Positions 290-28,942 of a stretch of DNA of 64,000 nt are shown here, piece by piece. Below the pieces are notes generated by a model that was not told the DNA's origin, ran no database searches, and worked only from the letters and a program-made list of their open reading frames with translations. Made by a program: the position numbers and the translations under genes. Location of the stretch: positions 82,522,001 to 82,586,000 of the forward strand of contig NC_092350.1 in NCBI RefSeq assembly GCF_963676685.1. The letters run 5' to 3'. Each line of letters begins with the position of its first letter. The stretch's first letter is position 1. Source of the DNA: Mytilus edulis. Taxonomy: Eukaryota.

Positions 290-575
290 GTTAAGCCTTC
301 TAATTGATGTTTAATAGTGTGTCTTTCTATGTTCTGATGTCATACTATTGTTTCAAAAAAAGGGAGAACATGTATTGTGTATTGCCATTTAAACGTTTAA
401 TCCCGCTGCAAATTTTTGCACCTGTTCCAAGTCAGGAATGTACAGTAGTTGTTTTCTGTTTATATAGTGCATACGTGTTTCTCATTTCTCGTTTTTTATA
501 TATATTAGACATAATGCTTTCTCGTTTGAATGGTTGTCTGATTGGCACTCATACCGCATTTTTCTATATCTATAA
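290..575 (+). mobile_element. Degenerate non-coding repeat (family D) with a twister-like 3' half and the common ATTGGCACTCATACC(A/G)CAT tail
   Basis: 396-438 reads TTTAA-TCCC-GC-TGCAAA..TTTGCA-CCTG-TTCCAAGT-CAGG (cleavage loop, P2, P3 hairpin, P4/L4). The 5' GAGG strand is decayed. The tail at ~541-570 recurs at ~895-920(-), ~4555-4590(-), ~41895-41925 and ~60780-60820. Confidence 0.55.
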
Positions 576-5300: not shown

Positions 5301-6755
5301 GGGTGTGGACGGATAAGCAGTTCCCGTCCTGTCATTTACATTAATTATCGTTACACTTGCAAATAACAACATATTACACAAATATAGTCGGTTATTTTAC
5401 AATCAACAAAACAAAAGTGGACGGAATCTTAATAAGTGAAAGCAAAAATAGTATACTGCTGTTAAATAGTTACAAATCGTTTTAACTGAAATTAATCCGT
5501 GTCACAAATGATTTAGAAAACTGCGATTGAAATGTATCCTTTTATCAAAACAATATTGTTTTCATAATTTTAACGAAATCAAAGCATTCAATCATATAAA
5601 ACATATCATCTTTAAAACACGTAAAATATGTATGAACAGAAATAGCTGTAAACCTGTAAAAGAAAACATTGATTACATCGGATTTACGGTGTATGTGCCA
5701 AAACATTACGTTTTTTTATGTTGTCGTCATTATTAACTGTTTTACATCGACTGATAAATTGCAATAATCCCTTGGTATATGCTGCTTTTTTATTTATGTG
5801 GTCGTGTAATTCTCTTGGGAAAAACCTATCTACTTTTTTTCGAAATACCATTTTTTTAGGATGAGACGACCAACATGATGATGAACATTTCAAGTGTAAG
5901 ATCATGTGGTTAGACAATGTTATTATTTTCCACCGTGCGGAAGTTAACTGTTTTCTATATCAACGAATAATAAGAACCAACAGACTTAATTTGACCACGA
6001 AGTATACGGTAATAATGTAACATATACAACCGTCAGAATTTAGAGTCAATAACCAAGTGAGATATTTCCACTGACCAGGGACATCAAAAATTATCTTGAT
6101 AAATGTTACGACACAAACGTGATGTGTTGTGGCTACTATAAGGTGTATAATGGAAAATACACTCTTTATAGCATATAAACATCCTGTTAGTGATTCAAAT
6201 CCTCTAATTTAATATCAGGTAGTGTGTCTTTTTCCTGCAAAGTATACTTTGATGAAAAGTTTAAAATTAAAAAAAGAAGAAAATACTTGCTAGTTTTGTT
6301 GGTTTTTTTTTCATATTTAGCCAACACTATTACCTGTTTCGATTTAAGTTATCATTTGTGTTGTCCCCTTCATAGATGTGGTTGTTTTTTCCTTGTAGTT
6401 CTACTGTAAATTGTTCATCCACTGAGGATGAAATTACTATAAATTTCTGAATAAGAAGATTAACATAATCATGAAAATAAAATGTAATAGTGTGAGATCA
6501 GATAGTCATGATTTCCCTGTGCGCATACGTTAACTTGCTATCTCACAGAATAATACAAACCAACAGACAATATCTGGCCATGAGATGACCTGTAATATTG
6601 TTATATATACGATCGTCAGGATTTGGAGTTTCTAACAAAGTTTAATGTTTCTACTGATTTGGGAAACCTAACATTAGCTTGAGGAATTCAAATAATAAAC
6701 TCTTGTGGTCAACCGATCAAGATGTTCTAAAAAATGTGATATGTCATTTTAACAA

Positions 6756-7059
6756 AAAGTAAAAACACAAAAATACTGAACTCCGATGAAAATTCAAAAA
6801 GGAAAATCAAAAATCAAAAGGCAAAATCAAAAGTCCAAACACATCAAACGAATGGATAACAACTGTCATATTCCTGACTTGGTACAGGCATTTTCTAATG
6901 TAGAAAATGGTTGATTGAACCTGGTTTTATAGCTAGCTAAACCTCTCACTTGTATGACAGTCGCATCAAATTCCATTACATTGTCAACGATGCATGAACA
7001 AAACAAACATACTCAAAGAGTAAAAATGTCAAAAATAGGGGTACAACAGTCAATATATA
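6756..7059 (-). mobile_element. Twister-bearing non-autonomous retroelement, family A, with a 6-bp TSD
   Basis: Flanked by TAACAA at 6750-6755 and 7060-7065. It is absent from the paralogous site (~61262-61275, CCATTTTAAAAAGAATG). Homologous copies lie at ~9880-10130(+), ~11325-11690(-), ~49660-49830(-), ~50010-50290(+) and ~56375-56643(+). Confidence 0.85.
6862..6961 (-). ncRNA. Candidate type-P5 twister ribozyme (intact)
   Basis: Minus strand: ACUGUCAUA-CAAG-UGA-GAGGU-UUAGCUAGCUAUAAAACCAGGUUC/AA-UCA-AC-CAUUUUCUA cau UAGAAAAUG-CCUG-UACCAAGU-CAGG-AA-UAUGACAGU. P5 is 9 bp, P2 is UCA/UGA, P3 is 9 bp and P4 is 4 bp. The pseudoknots are ACC/GGU and AC/GU. Predicted cleavage is between 6917 and 6916. 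Confidence 0.8.
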
Positions 7060-9127
7060 TAACAAGACTCTACACGAAATGAAAGGTTTTTAATGACATG
7101 TCGACGGCAGGTTAATATCAGATTTATCTAGATAAATATAGGTGGTGCGAACGCTGCACGATTATAATATAAAAAACTAAAAAAAAAAACGGTGAAAAAG
7201 TGACATAATAAAACAGATTTTGTTCTTCGTATATTCCTTAGTTAGTTCATCTCGTGTTAAATGCATTTCGTGAAGATCATTTTGACTGAATGATCGATCA
7301 TACAAATACGAAAAGCTTTGAAATAAAGTCACGTAAAAATTTAAAAGAACAGGTTTTTCAATAATATTATATTATTTGCAAGTAAAGTAGTCTATCTTGA
7401 TATTAGAAAAATGAATGCAAGTTTGGTTGGTAATGTTATGTAGGTTTTTTCCTAAAGAATGATTTCATGAATGAAAAGCATAGTTGTATAAGAACAGACA
7501 TTATTACTTTTTTTTAAAAACGTATTGTCTTGATATATATCGTTAGTATGGAAACATTATTTGTAAAACAGGGGCATTGCTGGTACGAAATATGAAATGG
7601 AAAACGCAATTCCAAACCATTGTTTCGATGGTAATTACATAATTGAATCATGTGTAAGAAATGGACACGGTAGAAAGAACACAAATGCCGCACACATTAA
7701 AGATGAATAATGCCCCAGTGTTATCTTAAAGACTGAAACTTTTTTATAGTTAAGCGTGTCGTACAACTTATCATAAATCATAATAACTAAATAATCTTCA
7801 ATATCAACTGACTCTTATATCATCATGTAACACTGCTTGTATCATAAAATTCATTTTCTAAAAATCCTCTTACGACAAAATCGTATTGCAAATTGCTTAT
7901 TCATGAGATGGTCTTATCAACTCATCGTTCATTCAAGGCTTCATTAAAGTACATTGTCATACAGGTATCCGTGATGCTCGAATCATAGAGTTCGACGGAC
8001 AAGATAGAGAAAACATTTAAGAGCATACATGATAAACAGCTAACATAGTCTATTCTTGGATAAAAACAGTTTTGGTATTCCGTAAAAGCCAATGTTATTG
8101 TAAATAATACAGTTATAAGCACAACCATTGCAATTAACTAGAAAAGACGACCACTCAATTTTAAACCATATATTATATGTAGTTTGCGTAACACTATATT
8201 TACTCTGAGCAAATGTTTCAAAAATGATCGCAATAATAATAAACAGCGGCGTGTCATAGTATTCCTTGCATGAATAAAATCACAATTAATTGATATTATA
8301 ATTGATTACTATTAAAACATGAAGTATCGACGAAAGAAAATAAAGCATCACTATACTTTCACAGAGAGGGAGCATGGTTTTTTTTTATCATTTTGATAAT
8401 AAATGTTTCAAAATGAAATACTCCTTCACCTTTCATATTCAAATAGTGATAAAAGATCGTTTCCGAACAAAATAAAAAAACAAAGAAAAAATGGAACTTC
8501 TCAAGGAACATTTTGTAAGCGTTAGGAAATTTGATTCAAGTCAAAAGATAAAACCTGCTGCATTGCTTCTTTTATAACTTACCTCTTTTAGTTCATCGAC
8601 TGATTTAATGTGATGATACAGGAATTACGTTTTTCCTTCAATGCATTGAATGTTATGAAAATAACCTGAATACATATGAATTTCAAAATAAAATTAGAAT
8701 ATTTGATATACATACTAACCATGCAACATTGCAGATATTTTTTAATCTTGTTTTCAGAAATATCCACTTAATGATTACATTATATTTTAGCCTTTGTGGC
8801 AGTAATCATAGTAATTACACATTTGCATGTATTATTTAGCAAGCAGAAGAAGCAACAACAACGTTTGAGATACATTTTTCATCAGGCGTTTTAATCACAC
8901 TCAAAACTGGCAAACAAGTACCATATAAGGCTCTTGAAAACAAAATGTAATAACATAGAATCATATTGAAAGAACAGTAAATTAATTTTCTAGATTTGAA
9001 CATATGGTCTTCAACAGTACACAAATGTAAATGCTCTTCAGAACTCGTTGTAAACCTATACATGTTTTGTTCTTCTAAAAGGTTGGAAAAGTGTTCAGTA
9101 TTACTTTTAACTAAATTTCTGTCTTAT

Positions 9128-9460: not shown

Positions 9461-9973
9461 AACCGGAAGTAAGGATTACCATCCCAAAATCGAGTTATTA
9501 GATTTCTTTAAAAGAGGACCATATAATTATATCAAGTCAGCTTCCGAGCAAAAGTGATAGTTTAGATCATATCATTTAAGACCAGACGAAAATAATTTGA
9601 CAAAATGATAGAAATAACGTACATTACCTTCCTATTATTACGAAATCGCAAAAGTATTGACTTTTTTAAGTGGAGAGTAATCCTTAAGATAGCATCTAGT
9701 ACGGCATCAACTTTCGTAAACATCTCATATATTTGCATTTCCTTTAAAGTCAAATGAAATAAGTGACTGGTAAAAAATATTGAAAATCTAGTTATTGAAC
9801 CAATGCATGCAAGTCAGCCACGCAAAGCAATGAGTGGGTTTTTATTTGATAGATGCTTTTTGTAAAATTGTAACATGGTGATGACTGATATACCCATTTT
9901 GACTCTTTTATTTGTTATGTCTGTTTAGTTCACGCATCGTTACACATGTATTAATATAACGGAATTTGATGAG

Positions 9974-10072
9974 ACTGTTGTACACAGTGGGAGGTTTTGC
10001 GCTATAAGACCAGGTTCAATCCATCATGTTCTACATTTAAAAATGAATGTACCAAGTCAGGAATACGACAGT
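9974..10072 (+). ncRNA. Degenerate type-P5 twister copy (family A)
   Basis: P5 ACTGTTGTA/TACGACAGT, GTGG-GAGGT, TTCAATCC and TACCAAGTCAGG are retained. The P4 5' strand is mutated (GAATG). Confidence 0.6.
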
Positions 10073-10254
10073 GATTAGGGACTTTCCGATTTTATTTTCC
10101 ACGGAAATTAGCATTTTTGTGATTTTATGTGATTTAATTCTTCATACATAATCAATGAACGAAAACAAACAAAAAACAAACCCAAAGAATATACAAACTG
10201 AACATCTGAAGATTCCTTTATCATCATATTATTATGTTCTTTTAACTGTAATAA

Positions 10255-10330: not shown

Positions 10331-11434
10331 ATATGACTATTAAGTGTCATGGACAAAAACAATTAGCTAGGTAACTTCAAGAGGAAAATCCAGTTAGTGA
10401 TACCAAGATAAGACCAGATGACAAATGTAATACCGCAGAAAAAACGAAAATCTCATAACCGCATAATATTATCAGTTCTAAGGATTTTGTCCATTACAGT
10501 ATCTAATAGCATCAACTAAGCTTTTCCATAGATAATCAGATAACGGCCTCAGTCTGTGTTATTGATAATCTTGTTACATAATTATGTTTTTAAAAGTAAG
10601 AAATTTACTTAACAGAACAGGTAAACAACTATAACAATAGACAATATCAAGACAACAAGGACATGCAAGGGTAACAAGAAAATAAACGAAAGGAAACATG
10701 TGAATAAAAGCAAAAAAGAATATGAATCAAGAGAGTAGCGCTATATTACACATTATAACAGTAATATAACCGTAGGAAGTTATTTATCGACCTCTAAAAA
10801 TAAACATGTAGTTTTTAATAATGACAAGAAAATTGACCATTCATCTTCCCACGCGTTATTAGTCATATGTGTATAAATACCTCAATTAAATAAAGAAGAA
10901 ATGATAAATAAAAAAAAATAGAAAGAATACGCAGTCCAAAATATTCGTTCATATATGTGATTATCAGAGAAGAATAGATTGAAACCAAACTGCACTTTTT
11001 TTTCAATACGCATAACGCGTTGAGTTTTTTTTACTAGAACTGACAAGAAGAGGCTTTTGATCTGTGTCTTTACTCATGTATGACTTCGAAGATGTTAGAC
11101 TGCAAAAAAAAAAAAGCTTTTTATATTGTCCTATTCCAAATTTTTGATTCTAAGATTTATGTGAATCTAAAAAACGGTTCAAACATGTACTGCTGAAAAA
11201 CCACCGTGCATTTCCTCATATTAGTCTATGTTAAATTTATCCGTTGTTTTTAATTGGCCAGATTGTATCTTTGTGTGCAATCTTTAGTAATAATGCACTC
11301 TCAAGCTTTTAAAATATTCTATAGAAAAAAGTAAAATCACAAAAATACTAAACTTAGAGAAAAATCAATTCGGAAAGTCCATAATCACATGGCAAAATCA
11401 AATAGCAAAACGCATCAAAAACGAATGGACAAGA

Positions 11435-11530
11435 ACTGTCATATTCTTGACTTGGTACAGGCATTTTCAAATGTAGAAAATGATGGATTAAACCTGTTTT
11501 TATAGCGTAAACCCTCTCATTTGATGACAT
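11435..11530 (-). ncRNA. Degenerate type-P5 twister copy (family A)
   Basis: Minus strand: UGUCAU..UGAGAGGG..UUUAAUCCAUCAUUUUC..GAAAAUGCCUGUACCAAGUCAAGAAUAUGACA. There are mismatches in P4 and in both pseudoknots. Confidence 0.6.
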
Positions 11531-12620
11531 TCTCATCAATATCCGTTGTATCTACATTGATGCGTTAACTAAACAGACACAACAAATAAAATAGTCAGAA
11601 TATGGGTACATCAGTCATTATCGTATAACAATTTTAAAAGGAACAATTTAATAGAACACAAAAACATCTATCTACAAACACATTCATTGAATCCCATTAT
11701 AAGAAAAAAAAATGAAATACCCAGGACATGTGTTGATGATTATAATTTTGTTTAATGCAATGAAGTGCAGGAAGAATCCCTACAAATACCAAGTTCAAAG
11801 TAATATTGTTTTACAAACATTTTTCGTATGCAACCGGACTTGACGTACTATGACTTGGTTGTATTACAACTATAGCAATATGCGCTTATCATATCTACCC
11901 ACATAGTATCTTTCTGTTGTGATCATCATACCTATTTAATTTGCATTGAAAAGTGTTTATGAAATTTGAAAATCAGTATGCAAGCGCTTCTATATGTGGT
12001 ACCATAATCGCTTTCTATTTGTAAATGTATGTATATCTTAGAGCGTTGGATGTGAATGTAATTTGTTTGTGTTTTCTCTTTAACTTGGATTTCATGAAAT
12101 AACTAGCAATAACAGAATATATAAATATCTACATTCTTATACAATTTAAAAGAAATCTGTTTCATAAATGAAAACAATGGTTCATCAACATGAATTTAAT
12201 CACGTTAATGATATCGGTTTAATACAGATATGTTTTTCAAAATAAAAAAGCCTATGCAAAAGGACTGAATCATATTACAATGTTCCTTAACATGAAGGTC
12301 ACCATAAAGATTTATCGATAAGCACAAAAGGACTTGCAGTGTTTTAGATGCTTTCGAACTAAGTTTGATTGCATATATTGTTGGCTTTATTAACCAATAT
12401 ATATTTCATTCACGTTCGAATAACAACATTACACATATAAAATTGTGTTTCCGTAACTGCCGAGTCAATATTGAATAACTAATAGAAAGAAAGCATGCAG
12501 TTGTGCAATTAATTAACAGTTGCTGTTTTCCTGGTGACGGACAAAAACACTATTTAAAGTACTAGGTTTCAGTACAAAACCATAGCTTCCCATGATTATC
12601 TTTCATTTTTAATGAGATTG

Positions 12621-13159: not shown

Positions 13160-13680
13160 TGTGTATAGTCATTTTATAAAATGTACTGTTTGCAAAAGTA
13201 TAAATTATTCTAAATAATAGGGATGTTCTTGTACCTAACAGAAAATCCTGGCCGTTTTTGGCACAACTTTTCAGAACGTTTGGTCCTCAATGTTGTTTAA
13301 CTTTGTACTTGTTTCGGCTTTCAAACGTTTGTATCTGGGCGTCACTAGTAAGTCTCGTGTGGGCAAAATGCACTTCTGGCGTATTAACATTTTAAACTTG
13401 CTGCCTTTTGTTAGCTATTATTCGTATGTTTCTTTGTCAATAATACTCTCCTATTTATTTATATTGTAGTCCTGTAGTGTTGTGTTGTCATTTTAATGTC
13501 ATATTTCACATGGCCATAAAAGAGGGAGGTTTGGCATGCCACAAAACCAGGTTCAACCCACCATTTTGCCTTTGAAAATGTCCTGTACCAAGTCAGGAAT
13601 TTGGTCATTGTTATATTATAGTTCGTTTCTGTGTGTGTTACATTTTAACGTTGGCTTTCCGTTGTGTCGTTTATTTTCTC
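13160..13680 (+). mobile_element. Composite element (family C): retrozyme-derived body, dead hammerhead and twister
   Basis: 13160-13382 aligns to the hammerhead retrozyme sense strand. The hammerhead remnant is at 13339-13382 and the twister at 13510-13608. The 3' part is homologous to 36120-36365(-) and 63810-64000(-). Confidence 0.75.
13510..13608 (+). ncRNA. Candidate type-P5 twister ribozyme (family C, near intact)
   Basis: AUGGCCAUA-AAA-GAGG-GAGGU-UUGGCAUGCCACAAAACCAGGUUC/AA-CCC-AC-CAUUUU..AAAAUG-U-CCUG-UACCAAGU-CAGG-AA-UUUGGUCAU. P5 differs in sequence from family A but still pairs. Predicted cleavage is between 13554 and 13555. Confidence 0.75.
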
Positions 13681-14229
13681 AACATGATTTGATTCAGCAG
13701 ATATCTGTTTGACATTTGATTGATATATATATATATATAAGCAAGCTGACTTTTTTTCCTTAACTCTTGTACTGTCCATAGATGATAAGAACAGTAAACA
13801 GACATATAAACAAAACTGTTTCATTAAGTTCTGTCATAATTTCTTCCTAGAACAAAAGTATTTATGACAAGCAGACGACCTTGATGGTTTATCACACTAT
13901 AGGTTATATGGTACATCACTGTCTTTGATAGCAGATGAAATTTCATTATTTACAACTCGCCTGATAAATCACTGCATAACAACTAGAAAACAATTTGAAT
14001 ATTTTACAATCGTTCCTATTAATTGCTTTTTGTCTTTAGTTTTTACGTGTTCATAATAAAAGAAATTAAAAAAAAAATGTCTGATATCTACAATTAGCGA
14101 CCAAATGACATCTACAATTATAAACCACCGTATGGCCTTCAACAATGAGCAAAGCCATTACCTCATAGTCAGCAATAAAAGGCCCAAAATGACATATGCA
14201 ACACAATTGAAACAAGAAAACTAATAGTC

Positions 14230-15499
14230 AAAAAGAGGGACGAAAGATACCAAAGGGACAATCAAACTCATAAATCTAAAACAAACTGACAACGCCATGG
14301 CTAAAAATGAAAAAGACAAACAGAAAAACAATAGCACACACGACACAACATAGAAAACTAAAGAATAAACAACACGAACCCCACCAAAACCTAGGGGTGA
14401 TCTCAGGTGCTCCGGAAGGGTAAGCAGATCCTGCTCCACATGTGGCACCCGTCGTGTTGATTATGTGATTACAAATCCGATAAAGAGTCTAATTCGGTAA
14501 GTCACATTCATGAAAGGGAAGGGGATTGTAGATACGACGTAAGGAACATATCCGATATCATTTGTGAAACGGTTATTTCATAACGGTCAACCAACTCGTG
14601 ATGGCGTCCGTAAAATTTACGAAAGGATGATTTCAACTTCACAATTTGGAACTCTTGGTTTAATAGCTTCCTTGTGAGCAGTAACCCTCTATCAAGAAAA
14701 TCATGATAGGAAATGCAAGCACGGGAATATCGTATCAATTGGGAGATATATACCCCGTATGCAGGTGCTGCTGGAATGTTGCTACTTAGAAATGGAAAGT
14801 TCACAATTGGAAAGCTGAAATCATCTCTTTTGTCGTAAAGTTTTGTTTTCAACCGACCCTCATTGTCAATTTCTAGATGTAATTCAAGATATGAAGCCGA
14901 CTTAACTGTATCTGTAGTATCCTTTATCTCCAATTCGATGGGATAGATGCGTTCCACATAGTCACCAAATTTTGAATTGTTTAGTGAAAGAACGTCATCT
15001 ATATAGCGAAAAGTAGAGTTAAAGGATATTGCTAACTTCTTATCTTTCTTCCTAAGAAGTTCCTGCATGAAGTCAGCCTCATAATAATAAAGAAACAAGT
15101 CGGCAAGTAGAGGGGCACATTTGTTCCCATTGGGGTGCCGACAGTCTGTTGAAAAACACGTCCTCCGAACGTTACAAATATGTTGTCAATCAAGAAATCA
15201 AGCATCTTGATAATATCGGTTTCAGAGAATTTTTTGTTTGAATGACAGTGATTCTTTATGATGTATCCCTCCCTAAGACAAGATACTTGTATCTACGTTG
15301 ACCATTCTTTTTTATGAAGCAAAGTAATACCAACTCTTTCAATTTGTCTTTTAGTTTGGAATGTGGAATACTTGTGTACAGAGAAGAAAAGTCAAATGTG
15401 TTAATACTGTTACAAGATGAAAGAGAGTTAGATTGTATGTACATGTATTCTAAAAGATCTTTGGAATTTTTAAGTATCCACATCTGATTCACGCCACCT
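14230..15499 (-). mobile_element. 5'-truncated Penelope-like retroelement, Naiad-type (RT at C-terminus, no downstream GIY-YIG)
   Basis: RT coding remnant at 15499-14508, followed by a ~280-nt 3' UTR whose fragments recur at ~10255, ~54190-54400, ~56337-56368, ~60963-61122 and ~62840-62935. Confidence 0.88.
14508..15499 (-). pseudogene. Reverse transcriptase pseudogene fragment (Penelope-like)
   Basis: Motif A TFDFSSLYTSIP, motif B' QQTVGTPMGTN/APLLADLFL, motif C FRYIDD and the PLE thumb region (LYDKRDDFSFPIVNFP...SQLIRYSRAC) are present. Frameshifts occur near 15258 and 15118. The ORF stops right after the thumb. Confidence 0.92.
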
Positions 15500-16613
15500 T
15501 AGTATAAGTTAATTTTAAGGAAAATCAACTTAGAAAATATACCAGGCTTATAAATGTGTACGCTAGACACGTGCTAGGTCAACATATGTTGTAGAGAGGT
15601 CCGCGTCAGTCATAGGGAAAGGACAAATACAAACAAACCATGAGGAACCAAATTCTATAAAATGATTTGTCAAGCTGTAAATATTAGAGTTGAAGTCAAT
15701 AAGATACTATGAATAAATGTAATCAACCAATTTGCTATTAGATGCATTCCAGACTGCAATAAATATTTTAACTTTAACGTGATTTGATAGGTCTGCACAT
15801 ACATAAAGCAGATTCCTCTCAAATTGTATTTATAGACATTGTTTTTGTTCTGTTCATTAGAGAAACGAACATGGCTGCCATATCTTATGAGAAAGTATGT
15901 TCAAGATTTGTCTTGTCTATGGTTGTATATGGTCAATTTGATGTGAAATAGCTATAGATATATAAATGCAAGTTGACTTGATATATTTGTATTTTTAATT
16001 TTGCTGCTGACAATTATTATAATGGATGCATTTGTCTTGTTTTAAGAGTTAGAAATAGAGGATTGAAAAAAAGACAACAGCAGAACGTTTCAGATATAAG
16101 GTATGTTAAAAAATGCTTTGCATCAATAATCAACATATGCTGGATTTTCAACATTTAGCAATCCTTCATCAAATGTAAAGAAGAAAAATGTTTTGCCTAT
16201 CTCATATGCTGCGCTTTTGACAACGTCAGTCATCTCAGTATCATATTGATGAACAAAGAGACAATTGTAATCATGCATTTGAAATTGGCATCACATGAGA
16301 AGCATTACTGTAATTGCGCACGCATATGTCGTAAACATTTATAATCTTATCCAAAAACAATTGATTGCAAATGCTAATATGACTGTTACATGTAACAACC
16401 TAATCGGTGTGATGGCCAAAAACATAATGAGACATGGTTTCGAGAAAGAATGGTTCGCCTTTTTTTTAACAATATCTATTAAAATATATGCAGTATCTAC
16501 TTCACAAAATATTCATGATGTAATATTCTATATACATTACTTGTTTCTCTTAACTTTTACCTTACTGTGCGTGTGTGTGTGCGTGTTCGGCGTATCACAT
16601 TATAAGCCTTTCA

Positions 16614-17303
16614 TAACTGTTTACACTACTTGGTCGATGCCACTACTGGTGGACGTTTTGTCTAAAAGGGTATCATCAGCCCAGTAGTCAGCACGTCGAT
16701 GTTGACATGAATATCAATGAATTGGTAATGTTCATAAAGTCGCTGTTTGCAAAGTATAATTGATTCTAAAAATTAAGGATTTTCTTATCGCAGGCATATA
16801 TTACCTTAGCCGTATTTGGCTACTTTGGAATTTAGGATGCTCAATGCTCGTTCCCTTTATACTTTGTCTTTTAACTATTTTGATCCGAGCGTTACTTAGG
16901 AGATAACTGTATTGTCTTTTAAGCTCTGACGGCATCAATTGGGGATTTGATAGTCGCAAACTAAGTTTACTGGCGACATGTTAGCGGAGAGAGTAAACGG
17001 GTATTTGCGACCATCAAATTCACAATTGATGCCGCCGGAGCTTATAATACAATATTGTTATCTCGATTATAATGAAACTGACAGAAAACAACGTTAAAAC
17101 ATGTGTTTAAAATCTGGCATATGCCGTCTGCGCTTGAGCGTACGTCCCATTGCATCAATTGTCAATTGATGCCATGTAAATAAGTGACGTTATCCAATCA
17201 AAATGAACGTTACAAATGTTGTTGCATTAGAATGATTGTTATAATTAAGACGGAACGCGCGTCTGGCGTTATCAAATCATAAGCCTGGTACCTTTGATAA
17301 CTA
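16614..17303 (+). mobile_element. Hammerhead retrozyme monomer interrupted within the ribozyme core
   Basis: Reverse complement of the 357-nt family. GAGCGTTACT (16887-16896) and AGACGGAACGCGCGTCTGGCGT (~17248-17269) are separated by a 337-bp insertion. Confidence 0.8.
16897..17233. mobile_element. Foldback insertion with two abutting inverted-repeat pairs
   Basis: Long arms at 16900-16960 and 17004-17064. A second pair is ATTATAATGAAAC (17066-17078) and GTTGCATTAGAAT (17221-17233). Boundaries are fixed by the host retrozyme, and there is no TSD longer than 1 bp. Confidence 0.8.
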
Positions 17304-17659
17304 CTAATACATTGAGTGTTTCTGATGTAAGGTGTTCAAGAGGTATGACCAAAGGCAAGTGCAGTTTTCATTGTGTTAACTCAGGTATGTATTTTTCATG
17401 CTATTTCTAATTTATTTGAAGAAAAGTGAATACGAATTTAAGTTTCTCTATACATTGGTAATCAATTACGCAGACATTATTGCTGGCAACAATCAGTTGT
17501 GTTTGCTTGTCCGTAATATATGTTTACACAGTTTCGCTGCTTGATATACATTCTTGTAATGTTTCAAATGCGCCTATTTTAGGTTAAACGTCCAATTGTA
17601 TATATATATAACGGATCCATAAACACCCTTATTTCGAGTGTGAGATTTAACGAACAAGT

Positions 17660-18116
17660 TAAAGTAGGTCCGAGACCACAATTATTTCCTAGTGCCTTTC
17701 TTTTAGAACATAAATGAAAATGAAAAAAATCCCACTTGCGTTTTCTCAATGAAATATTTACAGTGTGTTGTACTACTTTTGTGTCAAATATATCAAAACT
17801 ATAGAAAACTGTATCGGTTCTTACTTAAAATATGGACAATTGTATGCTTAGGACGTCTTGAAATCTTTTGACAGCTTCCGAAGTGCTAATGTTTAACCTT
17901 TTCAGCTGAACGAAATCACTACTTTCCTTTAAAATTCTGGACCCAAATTTTGTTAGTGTAATTTCACCCCCTTACCTGCAATTTGAGGCATCAAACATGG
18001 AGACATAAATTTGGAATTGTTATAAATTTAATTGGAAGTAACCAACTGTCAACACTAGGGACTATATGTGTGAACCAAGAAACTCATTTGACGACAATTC
18101 TGGTCACGGACCAGTA
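17660..18116. mobile_element. MITE-like non-autonomous DNA transposon
   Basis: TIR-like pair GGTCCGAGACCACAATT (17667-17683) and AATTCTGGTCACGGACC (18096-18112), 15/17 match. Confidence 0.65.
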
Positions 18117-21100
18117 GGTTTAATATCAATACACATGGCATGTTTTTTTAAAACAATTTTTAAAATATTAAGTTTGTTTCGGCATTAGTGTTGCCAATAA
18201 GAGTTTGCGTAACGTTTCACGTTTAAGTTTTATAAAGAGTGCTTGTTTTTGTATAAAGAATCCGTTTTGTATACTGATGGATTCCATTTAGATAATAAAG
18301 ATCTTTTGAAGCATATTAGTGTATTGTAAGCGTTTTCCATTGTCATACCATGTTGATCTGTCGCATAGGAATCCATTACATTGCAAAGATATTTGAACAA
18401 AGAAAATAAACATGAGGGTAAAAAATGTCAAAAACATGGGTAGATCAGTTAACATTGTTTTATCATCTGAATCAATATGAAATGAAGCAAATATGTCAAC
18501 AAAGATAAACACACTGCACATATAAAAAGCACATTAGCAATAACGAATGACAATACTATCAAAATTAACAATAGCAGAATAATACAATGACGGGATTTAT
18601 AAGTATCGAGCCACGTCAAATAGAAATTGCGAAATATTGACCAAACCGTAAACAGTTAAATGTACAAAGACACACAAAAGGAATAGCATTACACATTAAA
18701 TCTATTCTTTAAGACCATAGTATATCATCAGTAAGGTTCACCAATCTTACAACTCATTAAGTTTGTTCTATTACCGGAATAATTCAACTAGATTCAGTGC
18801 AAAACAGAATCTAAAAGAACTTTTTCATAATTGGACTTTTTACCTTTTGATTTGAGCGTCACTTGTAGACGAAACATTCGTATATATTCCAAGTATTTAT
18901 GACGCGTATATTATATAAACAAGTTGTATATACATATCCAATTGATATCGATTATAAAGTCGAAAGTCAGCCCCGATATTGCATTATTGTTCTTGAAACC
19001 TTTTTGTTATTATAAATAAACTCACTTTTGCATAAGGAGTTCAACTTTGTTGGTAAAAAATTTAAAACCATAATGAATTACATTTTACATTTATTGTTTT
19101 ATGAAATAAATTCAAGCGTAATTGGTAATACCTCCTGTTCATGTTTAAAGTGTGTATACTTTAGAATTTCGGCTTTATTTCTGATCGGTCCAATATCAAT
19201 CATGTAACCAATAGGTTGCAATGTCAATTAATTAGCTTTATCCATTGATTACATTGGACTTACTACTTTCTCAAAGGAGGCTTAAATACAACATTAATTC
19301 AGACAATTGTATGATAAAGAATTTTGTTTTAATTTTGAAAACTCAATGGAAATCAATTTAACATAATTAATTGACGTTTTATTTAGTTATCGTAATTTTA
19401 TTATTTAATTTGGCAGACCTGATGATAAGATTAATACTATTGGATATACTGTATATAGAAACCAGTATCGATACCATGCTTAACCGTGTGTTTCCATTTG
19501 TCTGTTGATTTTTAAAAGAAATGAAATATATATAGTTACAATTGTCTCCAGGTCTATAAAACACAAACAAACTGAAATAAACATTTTAATATCAACTTAC
19601 GGCACAAAGATACTTTAATAGCGCAATCTTCGTGCAAGTTGCTTATTTTTATAAAATAGCCATAATCAAGCATGTCCGTGCATGGCTATTCAAAGTTTAG
19701 AATGTGTTTCTTTTTTATTAGATCGTCAATGAAGAGGTCGGATTTGTATCTTTGATGATTTCTTACAAAAGATTTTTTTACAAAACTTTTGAGAGACATT
19801 TCTAAAGGTAACTGTATGTCCATGCTAACAAACAATTTAAAGTAGCAAAATAGCAACTGGGACATAAAAACACAAGAATCATCAATTTTCAATTAAAATG
19901 TTGACCTTTGATCTTAAAATCTAAGTTAAACTATCTGATATTTTGTGTTGTTTCACATCAAGAATAAATACTAAAGATGTAAGAAACATATATTTATTAG
20001 TATAAAGGTGTTAGAAACTAAAAAAAAAGACCAACGTTACTACTTTACAATTTTACTTTAGGTTGATTTGACAATAATATTTTTCGATCATATTCTGCTT
20101 AAAATTTTTCTATACTATACTATCATGGAGCAAATAAAAAATAGAAAATCGCAATTTTTATGAAACTTTACATTAAAATAATGACTAATGTCGAAGACTT
20201 TGTCTAAAAAGTACTAGTTTTCAGGAACAGTTCCTAGTAAATCCCAAGTGCACTGTTGGTCCACATCATATTACAATCTAGTTAGCTCTTTCTTCTCCTG
20301 TTGTATTGCATCTTGAAATACCATGATTTATACACAGTAATTACTTCAAAAATGAATGTCTATTATAGCAATCTCATAAAATTTGGGTTGATAAAAAGTT
20401 CTATAACAACAAAGGTTTCAGCACATATTTAATTATATATCGATAGAACAGGATTATGTCGCAATGAAATTACTAGAATGGAATAAAGGTGTTGTAACGT
20501 TGCGTCTATGAAATGTGCCTCTTGATAATAAGATTAACAATGTCGCATAATAGCTGCTAATATACCGCTAGAACATTTGAAGCTTCATTAATTCCAAAAG
20601 GTCCTTTCATTAATAGTTTACTTATTATGATACTTTAACAATGTTTACCGCTTCCGCAAATCCAAAAAGGTAAACATAGTGGAAACAAATATAAAACGAA
20701 ACATAGTTCATAGTTATTACTATTAAAAAACTAACTTATATTTTCTGCATGATCTGTGTTGACATGCACCTCGCCATTCATTGTCTTTTTGATTGTGCTT
20801 GCATTTGTTTTATTTCAGTTTTTATTTTTGTATATTCTGCCACATTGGTGAATGTAACAGTAGACTTGTAAATATTTCCAAGTTAATCTAATAAGAGAAA
20901 AATATAAAACAACTCTTTCAAAAAAATGTCAACTTATTTAGAAAAAAAAACAGTGTCTGTTGCTTTCCTTCGTGTTATAAAGTTATTCTAAACAAAAGCC
21001 CTTTAACTGTACAGGCTTAGAACAGCACCAACGACAATTACTTCCAAGCATTACAATGTCAGCGTTTTCAATTTGAGTCTCTCTATTTGGTATTCTGTTC

Positions 21101-21550
21101 CACCCATATTTGTACATAAAAAAATAATACATGCTATAAGCATGCAGGTTTACAAAAATGAATTAACGCTAGAAATTACAAACTAACACAATACATTTGA
21201 AAACCTAACTATTTAAGTCCGTCATTTTAGTATTACCCTTATCAACAATTGAAGGACTGGAAAGCAATAATCAATCTATTGGTTACTAATTGTAAGCATG
21301 AATTCATGTGCAGAAACAAACTCACTTATTGTTTATTTTAATTTCCAGAATATTTCTACAGAGGATTTTACTGATTTAATATTATGGTTTGAACAAGAAC
21401 AGTAGAAATAAATCAATGTGTCTTTGGCTTTAATATATCTTATTGGTCCGAACATTGTTTTATTTTCAAATTATCTGTTCATTTAAATTGCACATTAGCA
21501 AAAATGTGCATAAATAATAGTTATCAAAAGTACCAGGATTATAATTGTAT

Positions 21551-21594
21551 ACGCCAGACGCACGTTTCGTCTACATAAAACTCATCAGTGACGT
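21551..21594 (-). ncRNA. Type I minimal hammerhead ribozyme
   Basis: Minus strand: ACGUCA-CUGAUGA-GUUU UAUGU AGAC-GAAA-CGUGCG-UC/UGGCGU. Cleavage after GUC, between 21557 and 21556. Confidence 0.88.
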
Positions 21595-21907
21595 TCAGAT
21601 CAAAATAGTTAAAAAGCCAAATCAATACAAAGTTGAAGAGCATTGAGGATCCAAAATTCCAAAAAGTTGTGCCAAATACGGCTAAGGTAATCTACTCCTG
21701 GGGTAAGAAAATCCTTAGTTTTTCGAAAAATTCAAGGTTTTGTAAACAGAAAATTTATATAAAAATGACCATATAATTGATATTCATGTCAACACCGAAG
21801 TGCTGACTACTGGGCTGGTGATACCCTCGGGGAAGAAACGTCCACCAGCAGTGGCATCGACCCAGTGGTGTAAATAGTTATTAAAAGTACCAGGATTATA
21901 ATTTTAT

Positions 21908-21951
21908 ACGCCAGACGCGCGTTTCGTCTACATAAGACTCATCAGTGACGC
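21908..21951 (-). ncRNA. Type I minimal hammerhead ribozyme
   Basis: Minus strand: GCGUCA-CUGAUGA-GUCU UAUGU AGAC-GAAA-CGCGCG-UC/UGGCGU. Helix III is the palindrome ACGCGCGU. Cleavage between 21914 and 21913. Confidence 0.92.
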
Positions 21952-24064
21952 TCAGATCAAACTAGTTAAAAAGCCAAATCAATACAAAGTTGAAAGTTGT
22001 ATTTTTTTTAATAGAAAAACATTTATTACGCTTCAAGATGTAACGAATTATGAACACTTTGCATCAAACAGATACAATTGAAACAATTTTAATTCGGAAC
22101 GATTCACATCAACTTTAATTACAAAACTACTCTTAATGTTTCTGTTACTAGTGTTAAACGTAAATGAGGCAAATGGTTTATTATAATCTGTCAATAACGC
22201 ACGGTATGCATAACATTAAGACAAATTTATAACACACCCACTACATGTAAAAGCAAAATAAAAATGTTTGATTCATTTAAGATAATAAGATGATATTATG
22301 TATGCTGTATTGTCCTCCAATTAAATAGTCGATGGAAAACATTGTCATTTTTGTTGCTCTCTATGAAAACTACAAAATTAGAGTTGATTGTCAAAAAATC
22401 CTTTAACATGTTTTATTCATGTAAAGTATTTAAAGTTCATACTCTATTTTCAACATCATTAACAAATAGTAGATGCTCTGCAAAATTGCAGTAGAATAAG
22501 ACAAGTGTTTGTATATATAAAAAAGGTGGAGAGGGGTCTTGGCGTTGGGTATCTCTATCTATATTTATACGTAAAAAAGGAGGGGATCACTTCGGCACGT
22601 TCCTTTCTTCTTACTTTCACTTGGATGGTGTTAACAGTATGTCGACTGAGCAAGCACGACAGCTTGTAACACATGGATCTATAACGGTCTCCAAATTTTG
22701 GCATTTCTGCGGGAGGAAAACCCGTTTGCTTCAAAGACAAAACTCTACATTCTACATCATATGACAACTATCTCCGACTTTATATTGTTTCAATGGAGTT
22801 GCAACTCAATGCATTCAATTTCTCTCTTAAGCAGTATAGATTCAACTGACTTGTATACAAGCTTAAGCATTACATATTCCATTAATTAGGTATATGGCGC
22901 CATATATCTTAAACATACAGTTGATATGTACGACTAACAAAGTTATCTCAAGGGAACAAAGTTAATTACAGAAGTGAGCTTCTCCTGAAAAAAGGGTTTA
23001 TTCTTTAAATTGTAAGCTATTAGATCCAAGTGCCGATAAATACCAGCAAGTCAATTGAACAATCAATCGGTCAATATGTTGATCGGTGTAGTAGAGTGTT
23101 TGCATTGTGGATGAATAAGGCCTTCTTTTTGAAAGCAGAATACTTATGTTTTTTATTCTAATGGATAAGCGAACGTTTAATATAAATTACAGTGAAACAG
23201 TAAACAACAGCATTGTCATGGTATATAAATGTGTCAACAGGGAGTAATCCCACCGTCCCGATTCATCCACCTGTAAAGTAAAGACTTAAGTAGTAAGTTT
23301 CGTTAATAAGGGTAAGCTTGAGTGTAAGATCAGACCAAACACATAGAAAAAATGTAATTAACAGGAGAAACCAATATCTTTCTTAACGTAATCTAGACAT
23401 GTTCGATCTTTTTGTTTGCATATTTGTTCCGTAACGGGAGCTTACAGTGAAGATTTACACTTTACCCAACACGGAGCTAATTAAACATCCTTATTAATAA
23501 TGCTTAGGAAATCGTCAAATATTAAAGTTGTGCCTTGCAAATCGCACAATGTGGTCTAATTAGATGATTTATGTCAATAGAAGAATTATATCAGGTTTTG
23601 AATATGAAAAAAAAAATCTTTCAGTGTATTTAGAATGTGATCGTTTTCGTTTTCACAATTTAGGATGTCATCAGAGTAAATATGCTAAATCCATTAGAAA
23701 AGAGATGAATACTTTAACAACAAAATGCCAACATAACAAAGTGTCTGAACCCCGAAACACGTAAAGAAAATGCACCAGGGACAGATAGTTATGGTCCAAT
23801 GTTTTATTTCATTACCACGCAATTCATTTTCATAAAAGATTTGTAAATATGAATAACTTACAAACATAATTGTTAAATCTCAACAATGGCGAACCATTTA
23901 CAAAAAGCCTTATAGTTCACCAGGGAATGTTCAGAAAAATATTGGCACAATTTCAGTAAAGTATTTAATCATCTTCCAGATAATTATTCGTATAATTTCT
24001 CCAGAGTGTTGTCTCAGATACTTAAGCTAACTATTGGACTGCTTGTAGCAGGACATTCCAATAT

Positions 24065-24164
24065 NNNNNNNNNNNNNNNNNNNNNNNNNNNNNNNNNNNN
24101 NNNNNNNNNNNNNNNNNNNNNNNNNNNNNNNNNNNNNNNNNNNNNNNNNNNNNNNNNNNNNNNN
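24065..24164. other. Scaffold gap (100 N)
   Basis: Run of exactly 100 N. Confidence 1.
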
Positions 24165-25148
24165 TTTTCCTGGTGACGGACAAAAACACTATTTAAAGTA
24201 CTAGGTTTCAGTACAAAACCATAGCTTCCCATGATTATCTTTCATTTTTAATGAGATTGCGATCAAAGTAGTTATAAAGGCAAACAAGTACAAAGTTGAA
24301 GAGCATAAGAGGATCCACAATTCCCAAAAGTTGTACCAAATACGGCTACGGTAACCTGTTCCTGGGATAAGACTATCCTTAGTTTTCGAAAAATTCAAAG
24401 TGTTGTAACAGGAAATCTAAACAAAATGAAATCCTCAAAAATAAATAAAATAAATAGAAAACGTATGAACGACTGCTTTTAAATTAATCTAAATGAAAGA
24501 AGTGTATGATGGTATCCTTTTAGAACATCTGTTAAAACTTGAGCATCACAACAGGTGGTACTTGTGTAGTATGATCTGCGTACCCATACACACAACTTGT
24601 GAGTATTCCTGTATAGAATTATGTGGCTTAGTTTGTCTGTTCATTGTCTGTAGTTTTCTATTGATAGTGTTCTTATGTTATTTTCGTCTGATAAGTTTTG
24701 AATGTGACTTTTTCGGATGTGCTGCATTTCGTCGGGTTATGTAGTGTATTTCGGTTGTTTCCTGTAAATAGTTAATATTTCAGTTTTATCATTTATCTTG
24801 TGTATAGTCATTTTATAAAATGTACTGTTTGCAAAAGTATAAATTATTCTAAATAATAGGGATGTTCTTGTACCTAACAGAAAATCCTGGCCGTTTTTGG
24901 CACAACTTTTCAGAACGTTTGGTCCTCAATGTTGTTTAACTTTGTACTTGTTTCGGCTTTCAAACGTTTGTATCTGGGCGTCACTAGTAAGTCTCGTGTG
25001 GGCAAAATGCACTTCTGGCGTATTAACATTTTAAACTTGCTGCCTTTTGTTAGCTATTATTCGTATGTTTCTTTGTCAATAATACTCTCCTATTTATTTA
25101 TATTGTAGTCCTGTAGTGTTGTGTTGTCATTTTAATGTCATATTTCAC

Positions 25149-25247
25149 ATGGCCATAAAAGAGGGAGGTTTGGCATGCCACAAAACCAGGTTCAACCCAC
25201 CATTTTGCCTTTGAAAATGTCCTGTACCAAGTCAGGAATTTGGTCAT
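25149..25247 (+). ncRNA. Candidate type-P5 twister ribozyme (duplicate of 13510-13608)
   Basis: Identical sequence in the duplicated segment. Confidence 0.75.
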
Positions 25248-25868
25248 TGTTATATTATAGTTCGTTTCTGTGTGTGTTACATTTTAACGTTGGCTTTCCG
25301 TTGTGTCGTTTATTTTCTCAACATGATTTGATTCAGCAGATATCTGTTTGACATTTGATTGATATATATATATATATAAGCAAGCTGACTTTTTTTCCTT
25401 AACTCTTGTACTGTCCATAGATGATAAGAACAGTAAACAGACATATAAACAAAACTGTTTCATTAAGTTCTGTCATAATTTCTTCCTAGAACAAAAGTAT
25501 TTATGACAAGCAGACGACCTTGATGGTTTATCACACTATAGGTTATATGGTACATCACTGTCTTTGATAGCAGATGAAATTTCATTATTTACAACTCGCC
25601 TGATAAATCACTGCATAACAACTAGAAAACAATTTGAATATTTTACAATCGTTCCTATTAATTGCTTTTTGTCTTTAGTTTTTACGTGTTCATAATAAAA
25701 GAAATTAAAAAAAAAATGTCTGATATCTACAATTAGCGACCAAATGACATCTACAATTATAAACCACCGTATGGCCTTCAACAATGAGCAAAGCCATTAC
25801 CTCATAGTCAGCAATAAAAGGCCCAAAATGACATATGCAACACAATTGAAACAAGAAAACTAATAGTC

Positions 25869-27138
25869 AAAAAGAGGGACGAAAGATACCAAAGGGACAA
25901 TCAAACTCATAAATCTAAAACAAACTGACAACGCCATGGCTAAAAATGAAAAAGACAAACAGAAAAACAATAGCACACACGACACAACATAGAAAACTAA
26001 AGAATAAACAACACGAACCCCACCAAAACCTAGGGGTGATCTCAGGTGCTCCGGAAGGGTAAGCAGATCCTGCTCCACATGTGGCACCCGTCGTGTTGAT
26101 TATGTGATTACAAATCCGATAAAGAGTCTAATTCGGTAAGTCACATTCATGAAAGGGAAGGGGATTGTAGATACGACGTAAGGAACATATCCGATATCAT
26201 TTGTGAAACGGTTATTTCATAACGGTCAACCAACTCGTGATGGCGTCCGTAAAATTTACGAAAGGATGATTTCAACTTCACAATTTGGAACTCTTGGTTT
26301 AATAGCTTCCTTGTGAGCAGTAACCCTCTATCAAGAAAATCATGATAGGAAATGCAAGCACGGGAATATCGTATCAATTGGGAGATATATACCCCGTATG
26401 CAGGTGCTGCTGGAATGTTGCTACTTAGAAATGGAAAGTTCACAATTGGAAAGCTGAAATCATCTCTTTTGTCGTAAAGTTTTGTTTTCAACCGACCCTC
26501 ATTGTCAATTTCTAGATGTAATTCAAGATATGAAGCCGACTTAACTGTATCTGTAGTATCCTTTATCTCCAATTCGATGGGATAGATGCGTTCCACATAG
26601 TCACCAAATTTTGAATTGTTTAGTGAAAGAACGTCATCTATATAGCGAAAAGTAGAGTTAAAGGATATTGCTAACTTCTTATCTTTCTTCCTAAGAAGTT
26701 CCTGCATGAAGTCAGCCTCATAATAATAAAGAAACAAGTCGGCAAGTAGAGGGGCACATTTGTTCCCATTGGGGTGCCGACAGTCTGTTGAAAAACACGT
26801 CCTCCGAACGTTACAAATATGTTGTCAATCAAGAAATCAAGCATCTTGATAATATCGGTTTCAGAGAATTTTTTGTTTGAATGACAGTGATTCTTTATGA
26901 TGTATCCCTCCCTAAGACAAGATACTTGTATCTACGTTGACCATTCTTTTTTATGAAGCAAAGTAATACCAACTCTTTCAATTTGTCTTTTAGTTTGGAA
27001 TGTGGAATACTTGTGTACAGAGAAGAAAAGTCAAATGTGTTAATACTGTTACAAGATGAAAGAGAGTTAGATTGTATGTACATGTATTCTAAAAGATCTT
27101 TGGAATTTTTAAGTATCCACATCTGATTCACGCCACCT
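25869..27138 (-). mobile_element. Naiad-type Penelope-like element with RT pseudogene (duplicate of 14230-15499)
   Basis: Identical ORF fragments at 26147-26737 and 26895-27131. Confidence 0.88.
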
Positions 27139-28252
27139 TAGTATAAGTTAATTTTAAGGAAAATCAACTTAGAAAATATACCAGGCTTATAAATGTGTAC
27201 GCTAGACACGTGCTAGGTCAACATATGTTGTAGAGAGGTCCGCGTCAGTCATAGGGAAAGGACAAATACAAACAAACCATGAGGAACCAAATTCTATAAA
27301 ATGATTTGTCAAGCTGTAAATATTAGAGTTGAAGTCAATAAGATACTATGAATAAATGTAATCAACCAATTTGCTATTAGATGCATTCCAGACTGCAATA
27401 AATATTTTAACTTTAACGTGATTTGATAGGTCTGCACATACATAAAGCAGATTCCTCTCAAATTGTATTTATAGACATTGTTTTTGTTCTGTTCATTAGA
27501 GAAACGAACATGGCTGCCATATCTTATGAGAAAGTATGTTCAAGATTTGTCTTGTCTATGGTTGTATATGGTCAATTTGATGTGAAATAGCTATAGATAT
27601 ATAAATGCAAGTTGACTTGATATATTTGTATTTTTAATTTTGCTGCTGACAATTATTATAATGGATGCATTTGTCTTGTTTTAAGAGTTAGAAATAGAGG
27701 ATTGAAAAAAAGACAACAGCAGAACGTTTCAGATATAAGGTATGTTAAAAAATGCTTTGCATCAATAATCAACATATGCTGGATTTTCAACATTTAGCAA
27801 TCCTTCATCAAATGTAAAGAAGAAAAATGTTTTGCCTATCTCATATGCTGCGCTTTTGACAACGTCAGTCATCTCAGTATCATATTGATGAACAAAGAGA
27901 CAATTGTAATCATGCATTTGAAATTGGCATCACATGAGAAGCATTACTGTAATTGCGCACGCATATGTCGTAAACATTTATAATCTTATCCAAAAACAAT
28001 TGATTGCAAATGCTAATATGACTGTTACATGTAACAACCTAATCGGTGTGATGGCCAAAAACATAATGAGACATGGTTTCGAGAAAGAATGGTTCGCCTT
28101 TTTTTTAACAATATCTATTAAAATATATGCAGTATCTACTTCACAAAATATTCATGATGTAATATTCTATATACATTACTTGTTTCTCTTAACTTTTACC
28201 TTACTGTGCGTGTGTGTGTGCGTGTTCGGCGTATCACATTATAAGCCTTTCA

Positions 28253-28942
28253 TAACTGTTTACACTACTTGGTCGATGCCACTACTGGTGGACGTTTTGT
28301 CTAAAAGGGTATCATCAGCCCAGTAGTCAGCACGTCGATGTTGACATGAATATCAATGAATTGGTAATGTTCATAAAGTCGCTGTTTGCAAAGTATAATT
28401 GATTCTAAAAATTAAGGATTTTCTTATCGCAGGCATATATTACCTTAGCCGTATTTGGCTACTTTGGAATTTAGGATGCTCAATGCTCGTTCCCTTTATA
28501 CTTTGTCTTTTAACTATTTTGATCCGAGCGTTACTTAGGAGATAACTGTATTGTCTTTTAAGCTCTGACGGCATCAATTGGGGATTTGATAGTCGCAAAC
28601 TAAGTTTACTGGCGACATGTTAGCGGAGAGAGTAAACGGGTATTTGCGACCATCAAATTCACAATTGATGCCGCCGGAGCTTATAATACAATATTGTTAT
28701 CTCGATTATAATGAAACTGACAGAAAACAACGTTAAAACATGTGTTTAAAATCTGGCATATGCCGTCTGCGCTTGAGCGTACGTCCCATTGCATCAATTG
28801 TCAATTGATGCCATGTAAATAAGTGACGTTATCCAATCAAAATGAACGTTACAAATGTTGTTGCATTAGAATGATTGTTATAATTAAGACGGAACGCGCG
28901 TCTGGCGTTATCAAATCATAAGCCTGGTACCTTTGATAACTA
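28253..28942 (+). mobile_element. Interrupted retrozyme with foldback insertion at 28536-28872 (duplicate)
   Basis: Identical to 16614-17303. Confidence 0.8.

Follow-up and report, generated by a model that had tools for sequence, protein, structure and literature searches.

A probable twister-class RNA domain, open in P5, in a retroelement superfamily of the mussel Mytilus edulis

Dispersed repeats in a 64,000-nt stretch of the 1.37-Gb Mytilus edulis genome (the window; NC_092350.1, 82522001-82586000, labelled C7, with 100 N at 24065-24164) share a small RNA core that keeps its pairing while its sequence changes. Is this core a ribozyme of the twister class, which is said to go back to Roth et al. 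in 2014, and what would it do for the elements that carry it? An initial annotation of the window had proposed a twister opened in P5 and, from it, a group of "twister retrozymes". We conclude that the motif is quite probably a P5-open twister-class domain, maintained as a conserved sense-strand module of a superfamily of RNA-copied retroelements, with self-cleavage as its predicted activity. The motif is probably catalytically active, and a retrozyme mechanism is unlikely.

The segment plan and its covariation

A covariance model, R1, was built from an alignment (A3) of 15 copies in five families (E, B, D, A and C). Searched against the window, it returned 13 matches, including every site named in the initial annotation. 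From the genome, 127 distinct copies were examined and clustered into the five families, with majority-rule summaries confined to a 185-nt non-coding core. One plan is common to all five sampled families. Its 5′ half reads P5, P2′, GA(G/A)G(G/U), about 21-25 nt, (U/C)AA and P2, and its 3′ half reads (G/A)C, P3, CCUG-U(C/A)C(C/U)AAGU-CAGG and P5′. All segments are present, in the order expected for a permutation open in P5, as judged against the published Schistosoma layout and type-P1 twisters of the same genome. The latter are canonical (ACUU-UAA-CUCU-GCC-P3-GCCGG-UCCCAAGC-CCGG-AUAAA-AGAG-GAGGG-AAGU) and score up to 70.6 bits, above the Rfam cut-off.

The families fill this plan with different sequences. 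Family E (28 copies) has GGCUAGAGG-UAUA-GGGG-GAGGG-UU-GAGAUCUC-AYAAACAUGUU-UAA-CCCC-GC in its 5′ part and P3-CCUG-UCCCAAGU-CAGG-A-(G)CCUCUGGCC in its 3′ part. Family B (13 copies) reads GGG-GAGGG-UU-GGGAUCCC-GCUAACAUGUU-UAA-CCCC-GC-P3, and family D (18 copies) reads GGGA-GAAGG-UU-UGG(AU/UA)CCA-UUAAAACGUU-UAA-UCCC-GC-P3-CCUG-UCCUAAGU-CAGG. Families A (22 copies) and C (10 copies) have the layouts of the window copies 6961->6862 and 13510-13608. The presumed catalytic positions, the GA of GAGG and the AA of UAA, are conserved. The 5′ strand of L1 is UAA in E, B, D and part of A, and CAA in C and the rest of A; its AA is invariant in eight window copies, and the 15-sequence alignment keeps the second A throughout and the first almost throughout.

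Both long-range pseudoknots can be drawn in every family. In T1, GAGGG faces UCCC in E and B, GAGGU faces UACC in A and C, and GAAGG faces UCCU in D. T2 is a C-G pair plus G.U in E, B and D, or plus A-U in A and C, a reading that takes P2 as 3 nt, one base shorter, and that neither MAFFT nor the model alone places so. P4 is 98% paired and closes the loop given above in place of the class loop UCCCAAGC; the last loop base is U, not the C of the twister consensus. P2 has 4 bp in E and D and 3-4 bp in B. The 3-bp P2 (UCA/UGA) of the copy at 6862-6961 is a private variant, the family-A majority having UCC against GUGA, with 2 bp.

Covariation was measured on 106 copies aligned to R1 (alignment A4), with T1, T2 and palindrome 1 (described below) added by hand. 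Paired cells made up 84.4%, compared with 67.7% in shuffled alignments (none of 500 shuffles reached the observed value, a control that makes related sequences look more significant than they are) and 35-43% with slid partners. The covariation score was 0.44, compared with 0.18 and 0.05-0.09, respectively. Since the pseudoknots lie outside the model, the alignment was not fitted to them. Their changes are visible at the level of single pairs: T1 columns 39-149 hold GC in 55 copies and UA in 22, columns 34-151 hold GC in 59, AU in 17 and GU in 9, and columns 38-150 hold GC in 86, while the P2 pair at columns 29-104 is GC in 40 and AU in 38. In P5, both sides change in 9 of 9 pairs. The sequences of P5 and P3 differ from family to family, and both helices still pair.

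The 3-bp pseudoknot T1 has undergone two separate double changes at the family level, C25-G49 to A25-U49 in families A and C, and C27-G47 to U27-A47 in family D. The latter (GAAGG with UCCU) occurs in 16 of 16 parsed D copies, in most of which the loop UCCU, but not GAAGG, was fixed by the search pattern; in an unselected list it is the majority D state, in 5 of 8 copies. These data bear out most of the structural part of the initial annotation. The segment-by-segment reading of 6961->6862 was exact, and both of its predicted bonds, C6917/A6916 and C13554/A13555, agree with ours. Across the 106 copies the segment plan and pairing rules hold: P5 differs yet pairs in each family, P2 opens with U-A in A and D and with C-G in C, E and B, loop-4 ACC accompanies GAGGU and CCC accompanies GAGGG, and AC or GC faces the loop-4 GU. 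Compensating changes are found in P2, P3, P5, T1 and T2, as the annotation had expected of a family alignment. Its view of families A and C as otherwise dissimilar did not survive, as the two align over about 250 nt in a self-comparison.

When 141 nt surrounding an E copy were searched with the Rfam Twister-P5 model (RF02684), the alignment covered the whole model, positions 1-58 of 58, in the register predicted for the fold (GGGG-GAGGG-[21]-UAA-CCCC-GC-...-CCUG-UCCCAAGU-CAGG), with 23.1 bits and E 0.0036; the gathering cut-off is 37.6. The comparison with this model that had been proposed stood in its end-to-end alignment and fell short in its score, with no match at gathering threshold on the window or among the scored genome candidates. 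Together, the covariation and this sub-threshold alignment support the earlier reading, in which the twister fold is open in P5 and its P1 is weak or non-canonical. The Rfam twister-P1 model matches the family-A copy at 6853-6968 locally (23.1 bits, over P2-P3-P4-L4) and the family-D copy at 340-454 (20.9 bits). P5, P2, P3 and P4 all appear when B, D and a metagenome copy are folded by minimum energy. To read the window copy as type P1, P2′ would have to come from UAUGA; no GAGG follows UAUGA, and this alternative was discarded.

A metagenome scan returned 80 loci. Three are true relatives (JYMV01052387, JYMV01012139 and JYMV01050407), and the others are mostly chance matches. The copy in JYMV01050407 (2761-2867) keeps every pairing with a new P5 (CGUAAUG/CAUUACG) and a new P3; its P2 is GGG/CCC, GAGGU goes with UACC, and AC goes with GU. 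Because these contigs carry relatives of the twister core, their source is probably an invertebrate host, although they are filed as metagenome.

The canonical type-P1 twisters of M. edulis were seen at 12 loci (e.g. C1:118936226-118936285), five of them above the gathering score. The non-coding repeat in which they occur is a different one, with (TA)n and tandem units of AAAAAGCGCAAAUGUCC after them, and one such locus has no long open reading frame (ORF) nearby.

Copies in the window and the elements that carry them

The P4-L4 core pattern CTGTNCNAAGTCAGGA matches the genome 51,189 times (25,697 + 25,492), compared with 6 (5 + 1) matches for the reversed control, a count well above what chance would give. 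Most of the window copies are decayed in P4, T1 or P2. Their positions, with those of neighboring features, are collected in Table 1.

Table 1. Twister-like copies, segments of the best preserved family-A copy and other features of the window
Feature	Position	Strand	Remarks
Whole family-A element, about 304 nt	6756-7059	-	6-bp target-site duplication TAACAA (+ strand, 6750-6755 and 7060-7065)
Family-A copy	6853-6968	-	R1 87.1 bits; all twister segments present; best preserved A copy in the window
P5, 5′ strand ACUGUCAUA	6953-6961	-	Pairs with 6862-6870 UAUGACAGU (P5′)
CAAG between P5 and P2′	Within 6961->6862	-	From the segment map
P2′ UGA	6948-6946	-	Followed by L1 3′ strand
L1 3′ strand GAGGU	6945-6941	-	First G is the presumed catalytic guanine; GGU with loop-4 ACC is T1
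23-nt segment at P1 position	6918-6940	-	UU, palindrome 1 AGCUAGCU (6938-6931), linker, palindrome 2
Palindrome 2 AACC-A-GGUU	6926-6918	-	End adjoins predicted cleavage site
L1 5′ strand CAA	6915-6917	-	Predicted scissile bond C6917/A6916
P2 (UCA) through P4′	6873-6914	-	L2 is AC (T2 with loop-4 GU); P3 is a 9-bp hairpin, 6909-6889
P4 CCUG; L4 UACCAAGU; P4′ CAGG	6888-6885; 6884-6877; 6876-6873	-	Then AA, then P5′ UAUGACAGU
Family-A copy	9967-10081	+	P4 broken (AAUG)
Family-A copy, AGCGCU-type subfamily	11426-11538	-	GAGGG with loop UACC; L2 is AU; P4′ mutated to CAAG
Family-A copy, heavily decayed	50079-50191	+	GAGCU; mutations in P4 and L4
Family-A copy, decayed	56433-56551	+	Mutations in P2, L2 and P4
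Family-C copy	13501-13617	+	R1 92.7 bits; all segments; P2 just 2 bp; predicted cleavage C13554/A13555
Palindrome 1 of this C copy	13533-13540	+	
Identical duplicate of this C copy	25140-25256	+	R1 match; 11,639 nt downstream
Family-C copy, decayed	36166-36287	-	R1 match
Family-C copy, decayed	63859-63973	-	Loop 4 is AAGCAAGU
Family-D copy	340-454	+	UAA-UCCC-GC; P2′ GGGA; own P5 ACUAUUGU/ACAGUAGU; L1 3′ strand decayed to GAACA
Family-B-like copy, decayed	36985-37098	+	R1 match
Family-B copy, 5′ half only	63739-63836	+	GGAG-GAGGG-UU-GGGAUCCC...CAA-CCC-GC
Weak R1 match	45962-46065		
Type-I hammerheads	21551-21594, 21908-21951, 33190-33233, 33547-33590, 50934-50977	-	30.5-33 bits
Reverse-transcriptase fragment, 196-aa ORF	14508-15098	-	FRYIDDVL ... 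YDKRDDFSFPIVNFPF; duplicate near 26147-26737 (-)
Duplication, about 10 kb	~13484-23500 and ~25123-35140		Constant offset 11,639 nt; N run between the two
Inverted repeat, long and near-perfect	59605-59761		Sub-threshold plant miRNA-precursor matches, both strands

What kind of element carries the motif is clearest in family E. Its copies share a fixed 3′ end (...UCUCAAUUUUAU), and their starting points are many. In the upstream direction the longest cross an A-rich tract and reach an ORF that holds the reverse-transcriptase motif FRYLDDIL (6000-6617 of the locus). A genome search with this ORF gave 151 matches, most of them about 88% identical (best 150 of 43,731 candidates scored). Some copies stand in tandem 4,031 nt apart (e.g. 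C4:74632532, 74636563 and 74640594). At two loci, family-D tails lie downstream, on the same strand, of an ORF 73% identical to that of E. In E and D the motif is found about 420-830 nt past the reverse-transcriptase stop codon in sense orientation, and in E about 265 nt before the fixed 3′ end.

According to Craig et al. (PMC8557442), Naiad-type Penelope-like elements dominate in bivalves, lack canonical hammerheads and have poor target-site duplications; they are often truncated at the 5′ side, end at a fixed 3′ position and form partial tandems of 3.4-4.4 kb. The tails of E and D share with them the place 3′ of a reverse-transcriptase ORF, the variable 5′ ends and the partial tandems of about 4 kb. 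E and D form the 3′ tails of reverse-transcriptase elements, Penelope-like in look, for which the Naiad type is a fitting lead. Pfam and a protein atlas, searched with the reverse-transcriptase fragment (C-terminal 205 aa), gave no clade assignment; the sole named family was HTH_animal, in relatives. In many of the tandem reverse-transcriptase copies the open frame is exactly 480 aa, perhaps a sign of an in-frame stop conserved upstream of it.

For families A, B and C, only short copies without coding sequence were seen. One A unit of about 300 bp is complete in the window (Table 1). It is inserted in another repeat, of which an uninterrupted copy lies at 61123-62006; its flanks match 61123-61275 and 61267-62006. 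ARAGORN found nothing in the window, and no clear A and B boxes were seen that would mark a tRNA-derived head. The core is common to the short A, B and C copies and to the tails of E and D, and the window has only relics of this kind, most of them mutated.

Three further features of the window were noted. The 196-aa reverse-transcriptase fragment is Penelope-like and 49% identical to the ORF upstream of the E tails, and no twister follows it on its own strand. The duplication of about 10 kb carries a twister copy, the hammerhead pair and this fragment. It may be an assembly artefact, because it flanks the assembly gap, or a recent tandem duplication. The inverted repeat at 59605-59761 is probably a hairpin-forming repeat and not a miRNA gene.

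Palindromes, predicted cleavage and competing explanations

The region where twister carries P1 is unusual in this motif. Every family has UU and then a perfect palindrome of 6-8 nt between GAGGN and NAA: GAGAUCUC in E, GGGAUCCC in B, GGCAUGCC in C, UGGAUCCA or UGGUACCA in D, and AGCUAGCU or AGCGCU in A. Both sides of this palindrome 1 change in 4 of 4 pairs among the 106 copies. A second self-complementary stretch ends at -1 or -2 in all five families (AAACAUGUUU in E, AACAUGUU in B, AAACGUUU in D, and AAACC-A-GGUUU in A and C), with at least 8 nt paired in 67-97% of copies, compared with 2-5% in shuffles. Because the central bases stay complementary, which a hairpin does not require, we take the palindromes to pair two RNAs or two copies with each other. 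Cofolding favors dimers by 8-17 kcal/mol, as expected for any palindrome. The GGUUU...AAACC that flanks palindrome 1 in families A and C can also form a hairpin that encloses it and that would compete with T1.

With two covarying palindromes in place of P1, pairing of two copies may be required for activity. We consider it possible, though on the doubtful side, that the twister works solely when two copies pair and that the palindromes build the missing helix between them. The two ribozymes could then lie in one tandem or partial-tandem transcript or on separate RNAs. If this is true, multimeric precursors would be cut and single-unit templates spared, and Naiad-type Penelope-like elements, supposedly ribozyme-less, would gain a self-cleaving ribozyme together with their short derivatives. 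Dimer-dependent minimal hammerheads offer a likeness, as there too a helix is replaced by self-complementary sequence; they were reportedly described by Lunse et al. in 2017.

If the motif is active, the predicted cut would fall between U/C(-1) and A(+1), leaving a 2′,3′-cyclic phosphate and a 5′-OH. Such cleavage would process retroelement transcripts, a role like that proposed for hammerheads in other Penelope-like elements.

Several observations weigh against a cleaving twister. At gathering thresholds, the Rfam models gave no twister match on the window or on 8 loci, and a genome scan with RF02684 gave none among the best 79 of 31,236 candidates. Canonical P1 is absent: the 21-25 nt between GAGGN and NAA form no P1 hairpin, and the Rfam alignment skips the segment. 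Published work shows that twister cleavage is possible without P1, inefficiently. In A and C, P2 has just 2-3 bp. The A subfamily with palindrome AGCGCU, an abundant one, combines GAGGG with loop UACC, an A.G mismatch in T1. Independent covariation events are few because the copies represent about five related lineages, for which the shuffle control is too generous. E copies that start exactly at AACCCC are not enriched: about 10 are among the 100 listed of 139, and a control position 4 nt upstream gives about 8 of 79; the 139 sites are all those with a non-T base before AACCCC. This lack of enrichment is not evidence against cleavage, because a cut RNA may not be copied. Tens of thousands of copies hold both halves, so that their RNA templates must have been uncut.

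Part of this could be accounted for if a former twister had ceased to cleave and persisted only as a folded RNA module, such as a structure recognized by the reverse transcriptase. The lack of excess truncation at the site of cleavage and the dominance of whole copies, whose templates were uncut, fit such a module, as do the missing P1, the weak P2 in A and C, the amplification of an A subfamily despite its T1 mismatch and the sub-cut-off score. What makes it improbable to us is the conservation of unpaired catalytic positions that have no obvious structural role, AA in L1, GA in GAGG and AAG in loop 4, across the families, together with the compensating changes that maintain both pseudoknots. 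That an ordinary repeat core has come to resemble twister stems by chance is extremely improbable. Such a core would give no Rfam match at gathering threshold and weak z-scores in single folds, as was found here, but segment order, conserved loop nucleotides and two covarying long-range pseudoknots would all have to coincide.

The retrozyme explanation offered initially concerns the mechanism. In it, the repeats are non-autonomous elements that flanking ribozymes excise into unit-length, circularizing RNAs as transposition intermediates. Hammerhead retrozymes do exist in mussels (PMC7229834), as had been stated, and are found in the window too. The ends left by twister are joinable by cellular ligases, and the parent elements occur in partial tandems, with reverse-transcriptase copies 4,031 nt apart. 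However, there is one ribozyme per element, and the 13 window copies are isolated or oppositely oriented, with no head-to-tail arrays. Tandems are rare genome-wide as well: among the first 100 sites, 4 of 99 neighboring pairs lie on the same strand within 1 kb. Copies that share a fixed 3′ end, are truncated to various extents at the 5′ end and have a target-site duplication fit linear RNA templates, and the ends of the elements do not coincide with the cleavage site. As E and D also run into a reverse-transcriptase ORF, we regard the retrozyme processing of these twisters as very improbable. The preferred reading remains a twister-class domain in RNA-copied retroelements.

The hammerheads of the window score just below the Rfam cut-off of 34 and are unrelated to the twister repeats. 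They form two pairs spaced 357 nt apart, and the one at 50934 is single. Mussel hammerhead retrozymes measure 350-390 bp (PMC7229834). The pairs match them and are the real retrozyme-like arrays of the window.

Relation to known ribozymes and retroelements

If active, this motif would form by far the largest twister population of any genome, with more than 50,000 copies compared with about 1,000 reported for Schistosoma. Standard Rfam annotation is blind to it; since nothing is reported at normal search sizes, routine annotation misses the motif. Its palindromes at the P1 position make dimer-dependent control a directly testable idea. A search of the open-access literature found no P5-open twister in bivalve repeats or Penelope-like tails.

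The closest known structure is the type-P5 twister (RF02684), which has the same succession of P2′-GAGGG-[~20 nt]-UAA-P2-GC-...-P4-UCCCAAG(C)-P4′ closed by P5, and in which, as here, both pseudoknots can form. The mussel motif differs in its sub-cut-off score, in the U at the end of loop 4, in a T2 with G.U or A-U, in a long P3 and in the replacement of the P1 hairpin by two palindromes. It also differs in its setting, in eukaryotic retroelements and in more than 50,000 copies.

Superfamilies of short interspersed elements with a shared central domain, such as MESC, Nin-DC and V of molluscs (PMC4758252), likewise combine a core of about 100 nt with different flanks. That paper assigns no ribozyme to such a domain, and no tRNA-like head is found here; the comparison was by description. 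For short interspersed repeats whose central domain is conserved, the shared core offers a concrete biochemical hypothesis.

Variants of twister have been described from the 5′ end of Perere-3/RTE non-LTR retrotransposons (PMC8501958; PMC7761336). They too are a retrotransposon-associated twister class with a degenerate P1 and a high copy number. Those twisters are of type P1, sit at the 5′ end and cut off upstream RNA, and the target-site duplication forms their P1. The mussel motif, in contrast, is open in P5 and internal, in the 3′ tail, and its cleavage would split the RNA of the element.

Finally, the pseudo-LTR hammerheads of Penelope-like elements and the hammerhead retrozymes of mussels (PMC7229834; PMC8557442) appear alike in placing a small motif of self-cleaving type in a non-coding tail, in elements whose lifestyle is broadly the same. 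The mussel motif belongs to another ribozyme class, and its copies do not form short tandem arrays of the kind by which retrozymes are defined. In families E and D it sits where canonical Penelope-like elements carry their hammerhead. If active, it would place a ribozyme in the tail of bivalve-dominating Penelope-like elements described as lacking one, which would sharpen the question of what ribozymes do for Penelope-like elements.

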